A DNA stretch of 64,000 bases. Origin: Oopsacas minuta. Its lineage: Eukaryota; Animalia; Porifera. Location of the stretch: positions 813,854 through 877,853 of the forward strand of contig JAKMXF010000066.1 in the NCBI GenBank assembly GCA_024704765.1, read 5' to 3'. The notes beneath the pieces were generated by a model. It made no database searches and had not been told where the DNA came from. It saw nothing but the letters and a program-made list of their open reading frames with translations. Both the position numbers and the translations under genes were made by a program. Positions 30,921 to 39,900 of this stretch are shown piece after piece (position 1 is the stretch's first letter; each line of letters starts with the position of its first letter).

Positions 30921-33900
30921 TCAAATCTGGTTGTCTGTCTTTTCAATCAGCTGTAAGACTGGGCGGGGTATCCTTGCTCGCTAGAAAAACAACAAACATA
31001 AATATTTAATCAATAACAACAAACAAATAAACAAACAAACAAACACTACCTGCATTGGATTATACTGCTTCACGTGATCAGCTAATGGCTCTCTCAATTC
31101 TGGACAGATCTATAATTGTAATTTTATTATAGTTATCTCCCTGAGTATATGTATAATCAATTAATCATATTTATCACCTCCAATGCATTCTCTAATTGTC
31201 TTGGAGGTAGCTGTAACATTGTAGGAAATGATTGAGGCTTTGTTATCTAATAAATATGATACTAATGGAACTGAAACTACATAAAATGTGTGAGGGGATG
31301 AGATTTTACCCCTGTATCTGCCCTTTGACACCCTAGGGGATTTGGGTACTAAATTGCCGCCTCGTATGCGACACAAACCACTTCTCACCTGACAGCACTT
31401 CACAAATCCTTGCCACAACTTGTTCTGCTTCCAAACTTGCTTTGCAATTAGCTTTGATAGAATTCCAAGAACAAATGGGACAATATTTGGACAGAATAGA
31501 GTAGATTGTATCACCTATACTTACAGTAAATGGGTGTGAAAATATGCATATGAGAGGGGGGACAATAACTCACGGTCCTCATGAATAATGTAGGTATAGG
31601 TGTCATATCTAACAGCTGTTGGAACACCCCAGCTAACACGTCGTGTGTAAATATATCTGTCTCTCTGAAACATAAATAAATCGCTTGGATTATTGCCTTT
31701 ATTTGCTTTTCATCTTTAGCCTCTAAGGTGTGAAGTGATATCATTAATTCTGAGGGGCGCAATCTGCCCTGTGTCTTGCCGCGTTCTAAAAATAGCTCTA
31801 ATGAATTGGGACACCAACGCCTTATAGTTTCAGTTCCATAACTAACCTTGTCCCATATTCAGTAGTCTGTGGAATACTTCTTTCACTACATTAACGCTTA
31901 ACTGAATCAGCTGAGGTAATGCTTGTATTATCTCTTGCTAGAATATTTTGTTAATTAACCACCAATTGTGACAGACTGCCTCTGTCCGTGCTGAAAGAGG
32001 ATTTTACCTCTCAACACGTCCCGGGGGTGAGGCCTATTGAAGTTTCAAATCTCAGTAAGGACTGGGACATTAGCAGCGGTTCTCAACCCTCGTCACCCGT
32101 TGACCCCTCCCAAAATTTTGGACCCCTGCTATCGTTAGTGGACCACCAAGGGGTCCGTGTACCCCCAGGTTGGGAACAGCTGGGCTAGAGAGACAAAGAT
32201 TTGTTACCTTCTCCAATCCGTTTAGGACTGGAATCAAAAACCTAACATCTGACATTTTTCTTGAATAATAAAGATCTTTAACTTTTATTACTAATTCTGG
32301 AATTGGTGGAGCTATATCATAGAATATATTTGTAAATAATAGTAGGTGTTATAATATGGAACTAACTTTTTTCAGTGAGTATATGTAACATTCTTGTGAT
32401 TAAGGTTTCGGCTCCTGGCGGGCAATTCTCTAGCAATGCGTAAAGCTCTTTGGAATGCATACCGATTGAACTGACCTGGAAAATATGAATTCATAAGTTT
32501 GTTGTTTGTTTGTTTGTTTGTTTGTTTGTTTGTTTGTTGGATAGATTTGATGTGATATATGCAGGGATATGTATATATTTATGCTAAAATTTCACACCTT
32601 TTCTGAGCAGATAGAGGTGATAAAATGTTAATATAACGTTATATACTCACTGGTTGTTGTAGATATCTCAGAATGCACTTCTTAATATCATTCGTAGCTT
32701 GTCCGTATACGATTGCTAATCTAAATAAAAGAATATTGTTTGTTTGTTTGTTTGTTTATTTGTTGATTGTGCTGGTATAATATATTGCATATAAAGGTGT
32801 TAAAATTAAATATTCATATGATTAATCCTTACTGGTGAATTAATTCGTGATTAAGAGGGAGTAGCGCCATATACAGGCCAAAATATAACCTTATAGTCTC
32901 CTCGCTCCAGATCTCACCTCCTATCTCTAAACAACAATAACAACAAACGGATAAATAATACATACATATAGCTAAACAAACAAACAAACAAACCTGTATC
33001 CATATCCTCAGTCATTAATATTGGAGGATGATCTTCTTTCAAAAGTTCCAAATATTCCAAAGCAAATTTCTAGAAATGAACAAATAAACAAAAATTCTAA
33101 ATATAAACAAATAAATAATTAGAATTGTCCCGTGTGTACATGTTTACATTTATGTCCCATGTGGACCCATATAATCACCAAATGTAGGTATCATCAATAT
33201 TGCACAAATAAATAATAACCTGAAAAGATATCACTTATAAACAACCCATACCGTTAATACAATACTCAGATATAAGTAATTAGCTTTGTGATACTATAAT
33301 TAGACTGTACTTGCTAGGATCATTTCTATAGTACATGTCCAACAGCTCATAACCTAATGAGCAAACCTGCCTAACCATGATGACGATATCTCCCCCTTTC
33401 CTTTCAGGAAGTGGAGGGGTCACTCCCCTCTTTGATGATTGTCCTCTTTAGAGGAGGGAGAGGGGGACAACTGAGTGGTTTTTAGTTTTAAAATAAATTA
33501 TTTTAAATACATGTGGGTGAGTTACGTGATTACCATAGCAACCATTGACGTCAATTGGTATTCTTAAGTTACGCAAGTATAAATATAATCTGTATTTGTT
33601 AATATAATTTCTAACAAACCAAACTCCAATAAACAAATGGGAAAACAACAATCAAAGAATGCTCGTATGTCTGCTGAGATGAAAGAATGGGAGCGGCACT
33701 ACTCTCTCAAGAAGCAGCCTGTCATAGCTGTAGGGAAGAAAGGGAAAGCTAATAATGAACTACTTTATGCTTGCGGTCTAGCTATATATGAACCTAATCA
33801 GCTGATATACATAGCTGATTCTGGTAACTGTCGTATACAAGTTGTTACTTTTGAGGGAAACTTCGTCACTGATTTTGGAGAAGACATACTCAGGAGGCCC

Positions 33901-36900: not shown

Positions 36901-39900
36901 CTAAAGCATTTACAGTTCTATTAATAGACATTCCATTCCAATGGCAAATCCCGCTTATAATAATTGCTGTATTAATCTTACTGGTACTTATTTGTATCGG
37001 ATGTGGATATTCGTTCAACTTCACACCTTTTATTTCCATGCGGCCCACCAGAAGTGTCAGTGCGCCAATTGGAAGTGTCGCTAATGTTACTTTGGCGCCT
37101 AATGTGGCCGATGGCGCGTTGGAGAAACAAAACACTCCACCAATCAAACTCGAGGTTACAATTAACACAAATTCTACTCCTATTTATACTTCTGAGACAA
37201 AACAGGCGCGTAAAAAGTTAGAATTCAACCAATTAGATTGTGAGGAAATTACGTCACATAAAGAAATAGAGAATATCAAACCGGAACTTGAACCAGAACC
37301 AAAAGATTTGGAGGAAGATAAAGAGAATATCATACCTAATATCAAAAAGGAACCATTGACATAAACAATAACAACAACAAAATTAACTTTACTGCTATTT
37401 GTATTATTATGGATTTAATTATCTAAGAATTAGCATATTTATAATCTAATTATTGTTGTTTACTAGTTCTTCATAAACAAATCTTATTATTTGATGGCCC
37501 AAATTAGCCCAACACCTAAAAGAATTCGCGTTGGCATGGCAACAGCTGGACTTCCCTCTGTAGGTATAAATGGATTTGGCAGGATAGGACGTCTGGTGTT
37601 ACGAGCAGCACTAGAGAATGGAGGTGTTCAAATTGTGTCGGTTAATGATCCATTCCTTGATCCAGACTACATGGCTTATCTGCTCAAGTAAGAAATATAA
37701 TTGAAACTATAACCGAGATTAAGGAATGTTTAATCCAGGGGTTCCAATACAGGAGTACGCAGTGAAAAAGGTGGGGACAGCTGGGCCATTCCTTATTTCA
37801 CACCTTTTAATCTATTTTTAGACACGACTCGACACACGGAACATTCAAAGGAGAGGTGTTAGCTAAAGATGGACAGCTGATTGTTAATGGGAAATCAATA
37901 AAAGTGCATTCGTGTAGGGACCCAGCAGATATTCCCTGGGCTAAAGATAATGTAGAATTTGTTGGTAAGTTTAGCTGTAAAAATTGAATTCCTAATACCT
38001 ATCCACGTTGCTATGATATCATAGTTGAGCCAAATAAATTCCTATTACCCATTTACGTTGCTATGATATTATAGTGGAGTCTACTGGAGTATTCACTACA
38101 ACTGAGAAAGCTTCCGCTCATCGCAAAGGGGGTGCTAAAAAAGTGATTATTTCGGCGCCTAGTCCTGACGCGCCGATGTTCGTAATGGGTGTGAATGAGG
38201 ACCAATACGCACGAGAGACAATGCATGTGGTTTCGAATGCTTCCTGCACCACAAACTGCCTTGCGCCACTTGCTAAAGTGATAAATGACACATTTGGAAT
38301 AGAAGAAGGGTTAATGACTACAGTACATGCATATACAGCTACTCAGAAGACAGTAGATGGTCCTAGCGGTAAGCATTGGAGAGATGGGAGAGGAGCGCAT
38401 CAAAATGTGATACCAGCTAGTACTGGTGCTGCTAAAGCTGTAGGAAAGGTATTTGTTTATTTATTTTGTTATTTATTTATTTGTTGTTTATTTGTTTGTT
38501 TGTTTACTATATAGGTGATACCGGAGCTTAACGGGAAGCTGACAGGCATGGCATTCAGGGTCCCAGTACCAGACGTATCAGTCGTGGATCTGACTGTTAA
38601 GCTAAAAAAAGGCGCCAGTTTTGAGGTGATAAAAAATACAATCAAGGAAGCCTCAGAAAGTGAAAAATTGAAGAAGTATATTTCATATACTGAGCATGAA
38701 GCTGTATCCACTGATTTCATTGGTTAGTACATACAATCATATTACTTACTTTTGTGTAGTATTTCACACCTTGGAAAGATTAAAGTTGGATTTAATACAC
38801 ATTATGGGATTTGACACCTTTTAATGACCTCACCCCTGGGGTCATGTCTTGACAAATCCACTCCTCCAGTCCTGATATGTTAATATATTATCCTTTAATC
38901 TCATTATCTAGGGGATACTCATAGTTGCATTTTTGATGCTAAAGCAGGGATAGCCTTGAATGACAACTTCGTGAAGTTGGTGGCTTGGTATGACAATGAA
39001 TACGGATACTCATGCCGTGTTGTAGACCTCATCTGTCACATGGCCAAGTAATTATTGCTCGTATAGTTGTGTTAGAATATGATACTATTATTAGACTATT
39101 ATTTATTAGATTCGTTAGTTTGTTTGTTTGTTTATTTGTTCATTTATGAGGGGTACTCACCTCGATCAGAGGCTGTAGTGATTCTTTAGTGTACAGAGTC
39201 TTTGCTGCGTTCACTGATTGTTTACGGACCTATAAACAACAATAATTAACACCTATAATTAAGTAAATAAATACATTAATATTAGCCGTAATAACCATCT
39301 CGATAGAACTGATTGACTATTTGTTACTGTGAAGGTTTAAGACCATATTTTAGAATTCCACACTTCATTATAATCTGGAATTTGCTTAGCTGTATTTAAT
39401 AATCAGGTGATATGGCAAGGTAATTACGTAGATAACTACCATTGACGTCAATTGGTATTCTCAAGTTACACAAGTATAAATAGAGTTTGTATTTAGTAAA
39501 TATTATTTCTAACAACTAAACTCTAAACAAATGGCAACAAACAAATCAAAGAATGCTCGTATGTCTGCTGAGATGAAAGAATGGGAGCTGGACTACTCTC
39601 TCAAGAACCAGCCTGTCATAACTGTAGGGAAGGAAGGGGGAGTTAATAATGAACTATATGCACCTAGAGGTCTAGCTATATATGAACCTAATCAGCTGAT
39701 ATACATAGCTGATTCTGGTAACTGGCGTATACAAGTTGTTACTTTTGAGGGAAACTTCGTCACTAATTTTGGAGACATAGTCGGGAGTGCCTACGGAGTA
39801 GCAGTAACAGAAAATCACGTCTTAGTTACGGATATTACTTACTGCACTCTGTTCCAATTCAGTGATTTCAAAGTGGCTAGGACTGATGCCAGAGGATCAG

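Follow-up and report, generated by a model that had tools for sequence, protein, structure and literature searches.

A conserved gene nest in the glass sponge Oopsacas minuta, within a probable single gene for symplekin

Can the gene for a conserved, essential RNA-processing protein be a single gene when its two parts are separated by several complete genes? This question is raised by a stretch of 64,000 nucleotides (nt), called the window below, from the glass sponge Oopsacas minuta (GenBank assembly GCA_024704765.1, contig JAKMXF010000066.1, positions 813,854 to 877,853). The window is AT-rich (~35% GC) and dense in genes, and its minus strand encodes symplekin (SYMPK). In the public record for JAKMXF010000066.1, SYMPK is given as two models, a C-terminal one at 30921-33378 (360 amino acids, aa) and an N-terminal one ending at 40480. 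A sequence-only reading of the same DNA had joined the two parts across one long intron holding genes of the NHL, DNAJC22, CLCC1 and GAPDH types. We consider it very probable that SYMPK is a single gene, and that its ancestral intron 23, small and empty in a jellyfish, turned into a gene nest in glass sponges.

Symplekin exons on either side of the nest

The host gene and the parts of it that border the nest are the following.

46715-30921, minus strand: SYMPK host gene, with its ATG at 46715 and its stop at 30921; approximate model of 34 coding exons, 1145 aa
39229-39161, minus strand: SYMPK exon 23 ("exon A"), 69 nt, encoding VRKQ...QPLIE and followed by the donor gtgagt
33070-39160, minus strand: SYMPK intron 23, the host intron, 6091 nt, phase 0, between codons 785 and 786
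33069-32994, minus strand: SYMPK exon 24 ("exon B"), 76 nt, starting with KFALEYL and preceded by the acceptor tttctag

Some 20 full-length symplekins (among them that of a turtle, YVEKFALNYL, E=2e-20) align with the peptide encoded by exons 23 and 24 with no gap where the two exons meet. This alignment supports the joining of 39161 to 33069 in phase 0, which the sequence-only reading had proposed from a match to vertebrate symplekin. Six loci of related sponges, drawn from four ENA assemblies (L001, L004/L008, L005, L006 and L007), also allow the junction to be followed; their guest proteins are 50-94% identical to those of the window. At each of the six loci, GT stands directly after the ...IE codon and AG directly before the KFAL codon, in identical phase, and the homologous intron measures 4584-9664 nt. 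Compared with L007, 13 codons of exon 23 have changed synonymously and 3 non-synonymously; for exon 24 the counts are 10 and 0, which makes 23 and 3 for the two exons together. Judged from these alignments, both exons flanking the nest are under purifying selection in the SYMPK frame. The jellyfish Rhopilema esculentum, in which SYMPK is annotated as one gene, has matching exons of 69 nt and of 76 nt (phase 1), and the intron that parts them measures 443 nt and is empty. The conservation of GT, AG and phase, the purifying selection and the jellyfish exon boundaries lead us to infer that SYMPK is spliced in cis across the nest.

The remainder of the gene was modelled by dynamic programming and hand curation with the guest genes masked, and full-length symplekins for mapping were taken from a representative-protein search. 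Model residues 12-1144 form a single blastp high-scoring pair with residues 31-1108 of a jellyfish symplekin (P0014; 43% identity, 855 bits), and a turtle symplekin (P0073) is likewise covered by one blastp alignment at 42% identity. Residues 55-1108 of P0014 map collinearly onto 45391-30927 by tblastn, and no part is duplicated. The public N- and C-terminal models carry the domains PF11935 (N-terminal HEAT) and PF12295 (C-terminal), and the joined model is collinear with full-length symplekins. This single collinear alignment of the 34-exon model upholds the earlier view that both parts belong to one gene and are not two partial paralogs. Exons 1-2 were placed at 46715-46558; exons 11-14 are of low confidence. 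A first automatic model, which ran through antisense guest frames and the DNAJC22 open reading frame (ORF), was an artefact of scoring any conserved frame and was dropped.

Apart from intron 23, SYMPK introns are short, with a median of 68 nt and 30 of 32 measuring ≤522 nt, in agreement with the earlier description of them as mostly 50-500 bp. The two remaining long introns (1166 and 1283 nt) each house an NHL copy. Many short introns have runs of (GTTT)n or (GTT)n right after the GT donor, and some consist largely of them (for example, ACAG|gtttgtttgtttgtttgttt; starts of this kind lie at 32975-32993, 31020-31049, 38450-38513 and 46660-46676). Homologous introns in the relatives also contain G/T-rich repeats, with different units.

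Several points weigh against a single gene spliced across the nest. The public annotation has two separate SYMPK models, and exons 11-14 of our own model are approximate. A search with an 80-aa junction peptide returned no candidate protein, searches of metagenome contigs with exact and degenerate forms of the junction DNA pattern gave no match, and the representative-protein search yielded no transcript-derived glass-sponge symplekin, only single-exon ORF calls. In addition, the DNAJC22-like gene lies on the SYMPK strand and would have to possess a cleavage/polyadenylation site within the SYMPK intron, which full-length SYMPK transcription would have to read through.

The two public models would fit a gene fission, in which one gene would express the N-terminal HEAT part of symplekin and another the C-terminal part, and the genes of the nest would simply lie in the space between the two. 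A methionine within exon 24 (…ILMTEDM…), conserved in the relatives, could serve such a reading. However, exon 23, which is present in neither public model, is under purifying selection and has a conserved GT donor. Protein-level conservation of the 18 codons of exon 24 that precede the methionine is 92-100%, alongside numerous synonymous changes, and these codons must therefore be translated from an upstream start. The public N-terminal model (40480-44512+) runs past a donor to its stop at 40480. The C-terminal model begins with an exon that is antisense to a U3 snoRNA gene; the ATG of this exon lies in invariant U3 sequence, and its donor is not conserved in the relatives. Threading through antisense conserved frames, as in our discarded automatic model, may also explain this exon. 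Moreover, both exon boundaries and their phases match the jellyfish gene, and Francis et al. (2023; PMC10282587), who list only 83 nested genes for O. minuta, suggest annotation settings as the reason for low nested-gene counts in some genomes. On balance, fission appears unlikely, and a single SYMPK gene remains the preferred explanation.

Guest genes of intron 23

Five guests fall within 33301-39051, wholly inside the intron at 33070-39160.

33301-33479, plus strand (antisense to SYMPK): U3 snoRNA gene, a full-length match to Rfam RF00012
33529-34512, plus strand: NHL-C cassette, ~985 nt, comprising an upstream module of ~108 nt and an intronless ORF at 33637-34512 (291 aa)
35774-34740, minus strand (the SYMPK strand): DNAJC22-like gene, 344 aa, intronless; Pfam TM2 (54.7 bits) and DnaJ (48.1 bits)
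36033-37364, plus strand: CLCC1-like gene (MCLC family), 443 aa, intronless; Pfam MCLC
37494-39051, plus strand: GAPDH, five exons at 37494-37687, 37822-37964, 38075-38448, 38515-38722 and 38912-39051

The proposal that the intron contains four complete genes, including GAPDH, holds in that all four are intact by their ORFs and Pfam domains; the count falls short by one, as the U3 gene had been missed. With unbroken ORFs, the expected Pfam domains, conservation as ORFs in the relatives and a full-length U3 match, the guests are by sequence criteria intact genes and not pseudogene debris.

The U3 gene matches model positions 1-219 of RF00012 at 96.1 bits (gathering score 34, E=5.7e-20), and U3 occupies the equivalent place in L001, L004, L005 and L006 with 96-108 bits. 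A TATA-like element, CTCAGATATAAG, lies ~25-35 nt upstream of the gene (~33267-33278, plus strand). In the relatives, little or nothing changes in this element or in an ACCCAT motif farther upstream, whereas the spacer between them varies; the region comprising both is likely the U3 promoter. No U3 gene is among the called genes shown for this locus in the public record.

In the DNAJC22-like protein, TM2 occupies residues 2-50 and DnaJ residues 282-340. It is 61-72% identical to the ORFs of the relatives, and its best named matches are proteins called DNAJC22, at 33-37% full-length identity. The CLCC1-like protein matches PF05934 (MCLC) only over residues 160-330, where it scores 54.7 bits (cutoff 25), and is 50-70% identical to its counterparts in the relatives. 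Only the last 116 aa of the DNAJC22-like protein are covered by the public model (34740-35090), and the public CLCC1 (36105-37364) and GAPDH (37536-39051) models begin at later ATGs. The exact NHL-C protein, which matches Pfam NHL with 74.5 bits, is annotated there.

GAPDH was described in the earlier reading as a five-exon gene that keeps its introns, and five exons were indeed read, with GT-AG boundaries at four of four introns. Because it has introns, this GAPDH is not a retrocopy. Its product is 352 aa long if translation starts at the first ATG and 338 aa long if it starts at 37536, with Gp_dh_N and Gp_dh_C domains (Pfam matches on exons 1, 3 and 4) and the catalytic cysteine motif in exon 3. 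Exon by exon, identity to the relatives is 67-94%. In L005, the most distant relative, the counterpart of exon 3 (10741-11915) is split by an extra intron of ~660 nt, and GAPDH intron content therefore varies within the group.

The protein-coding guests are closely spaced. The convergent stop codons of NHL-C and DNAJC22 are 227 nt apart, the divergent start codons of DNAJC22 and CLCC1 are 258 nt apart, the CLCC1 stop is followed after 129 nt by the GAPDH ATG, and the GAPDH stop lies 109 nt from the donor of SYMPK exon 23. Between the GAPDH stop (39049-39051) and exon 23, no AATAAA or ATTAAA is present in the window, L001 or L007. The first such signal after GAPDH in the window is at 39266, past exon 23, and thus the 3' untranslated region of GAPDH may overlap exon 23 in antisense. 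Any such overlap is not a conserved feature: L004, L005, L006 and L008 have a signal in the gap.

Age of the nest and the NHL cassette

At all six related loci, a SYMPK exon, GAPDH, CLCC1, DNAJC22, U3 and a second SYMPK exon occur in the same order and orientation with intact ORFs, and the order of genes for which synteny had been suggested as a check is kept throughout the four assemblies. The DNAJC22-to-U3 distance is only ~100 nt in L007.

This conservation bears on whether the block was misplaced between two SYMPK parts by an assembly misjoin. Little favours such an error beyond the odd layout itself and the multi-copy NHL part, around which (33.5-34.4 kb) short-read contigs break. The same order is found at the six loci of other species, assembled independently, and a misjoin is therefore effectively excluded. 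Contigs assembled independently from reads of the source sample are also 100% identical over 34428-38449 and over 36866-39249 and beyond, bridging the right edge and the interior of the block. We give a misjoin almost no weight.

A 2024 run labelled as another organism (X5) contains low-depth DNA ~95% identical to DNAJC22, the 5' end of CLCC1 and NHL parts (within 33250-39249). Its source is probably a close relative or a divergent O. minuta population.

The intron is empty between the same two exons in the jellyfish, and we therefore take the host intron to be ancestral and the genes to have moved in. The earlier proposal of a DNA-level block insertion is thus retained as regards entry into a pre-existing intron, for which the empty 443-nt jellyfish intron speaks, and is set aside as regards a single block. 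An NHL gene is absent from the homologous SYMPK intron at six of six related loci; NHL-C is found only in O. minuta, whereas the other guests are found in all relatives, and hence NHL-C is a later addition. The intronless DNAJC22 and CLCC1 genes could have arrived separately from the other guests. Because both lack introns, they may have arisen by retroposition, an argument tempered by the single-exon nature of most glass-sponge transcripts (PMC10282587). Two further loci do not date the nest: L009 has a distant DNAJC22 (35% identity) with none of the partner genes adjoining, and L011, from a compact eukaryote, has an un-nested symplekin.

Two more NHL copies reside in the other long SYMPK introns.

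39531-40397, plus strand: NHL-B, second copy, 288 aa, in SYMPK intron 22 (39230-40512, 1283 nt)
45513-46474, minus strand (the SYMPK strand): NHL-A, third copy, in SYMPK intron 2 (45392-46557, 1166 nt)

NHL-B is not present in the corresponding intron of the relatives, where exon spacing is ~50-500 nt. The reading frame of NHL-A is broken into two ORF pieces in different frames, and this copy is the inverted-repeat partner of NHL-C and NHL-B. The NHL-C module and ORF are repeated at 39432-40397 and 46474-45513. Each copy carries an upstream module (33529-33636, 39426-39530 and 46415-46474) with a palindrome, ACCATTGACGTCAATTGGT, in which a CRE-like TGACGTCA is flanked by CCAAT/ATTGG, followed by TATAAATA. 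In NHL-C, the module shows the TGACGTCA palindrome, CCAAT and TATAAATA in this way. The module resembles a promoter that is compact and portable. A partly similar motif, CTATAGCAACCATTGATGC...TATATA, is located near 46790, just upstream of the SYMPK start.

Together, these comparisons suggest a nest of two layers. An old core, common to all related assemblies examined, consists of CLCC1 and GAPDH in tandem and U3, all antisense to SYMPK, together with DNAJC22, which has the SYMPK orientation and diverges from CLCC1. A self-contained NHL cassette of promoter and ORF came later, in O. minuta only, with two more copies landing in other SYMPK introns.

Elsewhere in the window, the space between striatin exons (52379-52260 ... 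50028-49894) holds a stop-to-stop frame of 489 codons (50084-51550, minus strand) that encodes a full Amidase domain (QRSL1/GatA-like). Read from the sequence, this frame on the striatin strand is another nest in the window.

Expression of the nest and comparison with known systems

If SYMPK is a single gene, RNA polymerase II would transcribe it through the whole nest, and the spliceosome would remove the 6.1-kb intron in cis. The guests would be driven by compact promoters of their own, including the 258-nt gap between DNAJC22 and CLCC1, the CRE/TATA module of NHL and the TATA-like element of U3. Alternatively, GAPDH may be a downstream cistron of CLCC1 expressed via spliced-leader trans-splicing, and DNAJC22 might likewise be a cistron cut out of the SYMPK pre-mRNA. 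Acceptor-like sites are present 28 nt before the GAPDH ATG (tttactag) and 33 nt before the DNAJC22 ATG (aaatag).

Each half of SYMPK might also have a pre-mRNA of its own, with genic trans-splicing then linking the two at the conserved splice sites. Conservation of GT, AG and phase is as compatible with trans-splicing as with cis-splicing, and a polymerase transcribing SYMPK in cis would need to get past both the DNAJC22 poly(A) site and the head-on GAPDH gene. Spliced-leader trans-splicing machinery exists in this lineage, as Francis et al. (PMC10282587) report for the Aphrocallistes vastus genome, which has extensive microsynteny with that of O. minuta. However, no conserved promoter-like element or start exon is found upstream of exon 24, where U3 and the element before it take up the space. 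Cis-splicing can also readily span introns of 4.6-9.7 kb, and trans-splicing is the less economical explanation. We regard it as very unlikely, and cis-splicing of one SYMPK transcript is retained as the preferred reading.

Two features of the layout could bring the nested genes into conflict with SYMPK: the sense-strand DNAJC22 poly(A) site, and the convergent 3' end of GAPDH, ≤~110 nt from exon 23. The locus could be used to test how a compact genome deals with an intron that contains both a poly(A) site on the sense strand and a gene transcribed head-on and, presumably, strongly.

Genes for cleavage/polyadenylation factors such as CSTF3 and PCF11 are autoregulated by intronic polyadenylation. 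The SYMPK locus would resemble these examples in that a gene for a 3'-end-processing factor appears to have a sense-strand poly(A) site in its own intron. It differs from them in that the site would be part of a gene lying within the intron (DNAJC22), and regulation is no more than a possibility suggested by the layout. Symplekin being a cleavage/polyadenylation scaffold, the site could mediate negative feedback on SYMPK: more symplekin would lead to more intronic termination, yielding DNAJC22 mRNA or truncated SYMPK and fewer full-length SYMPK mRNAs. Convergent GAPDH transcription ending ~110 nt from exon 23 could add to this effect. We consider a functional role of this kind improbable.

Several complete genes in one intron are also known from human NF1, whose intron 27b, tens of kilobases long, holds the tissue-restricted genes OMG, EVI2A and EVI2B. 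Like that intron, the SYMPK nest places several complete genes, mostly antisense, in one intron of a large conserved host. Unlike the NF1 guests, those in SYMPK have the appearance of housekeeping genes, stand close together at distances of 109-260 nt and are found on both strands.

The closest parallels are within the same lineage. The sequence-only reading had taken nested genes to be usually single, small and tissue-restricted, a generalization that fails for glass sponges: in A. vastus, 2432 nested genes make up 12.4% of genes, and many are conserved, with guests that are mostly single-exon, according to Francis et al. (2023; PMC10282587). A term search of passages of that paper found no mention of the SYMPK locus. 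The nest described here thus belongs to a lineage and a phenomenon already documented, and reveals no new kind of system. Its interest lies in correcting the public models of an RNA-processing gene, conserved and essential, from a glass sponge, a group of which few members have been sequenced, and in offering a clean, datable case of nest formation, from an ancestral intron of the 443-nt class, through the arrival of housekeeping genes and a snoRNA, to a recently spreading NHL cassette, with the core of the nest retained across glass-sponge species. Compared with the published glass-sponge nests, it is set apart by five genes in one intron, GAPDH and U3 among them, and by a host that the O. 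minuta annotation splits. The SYMPK nest is real, conserved and wrongly annotated; it is a rather crowded case of something already known, in a group in which nesting is common.

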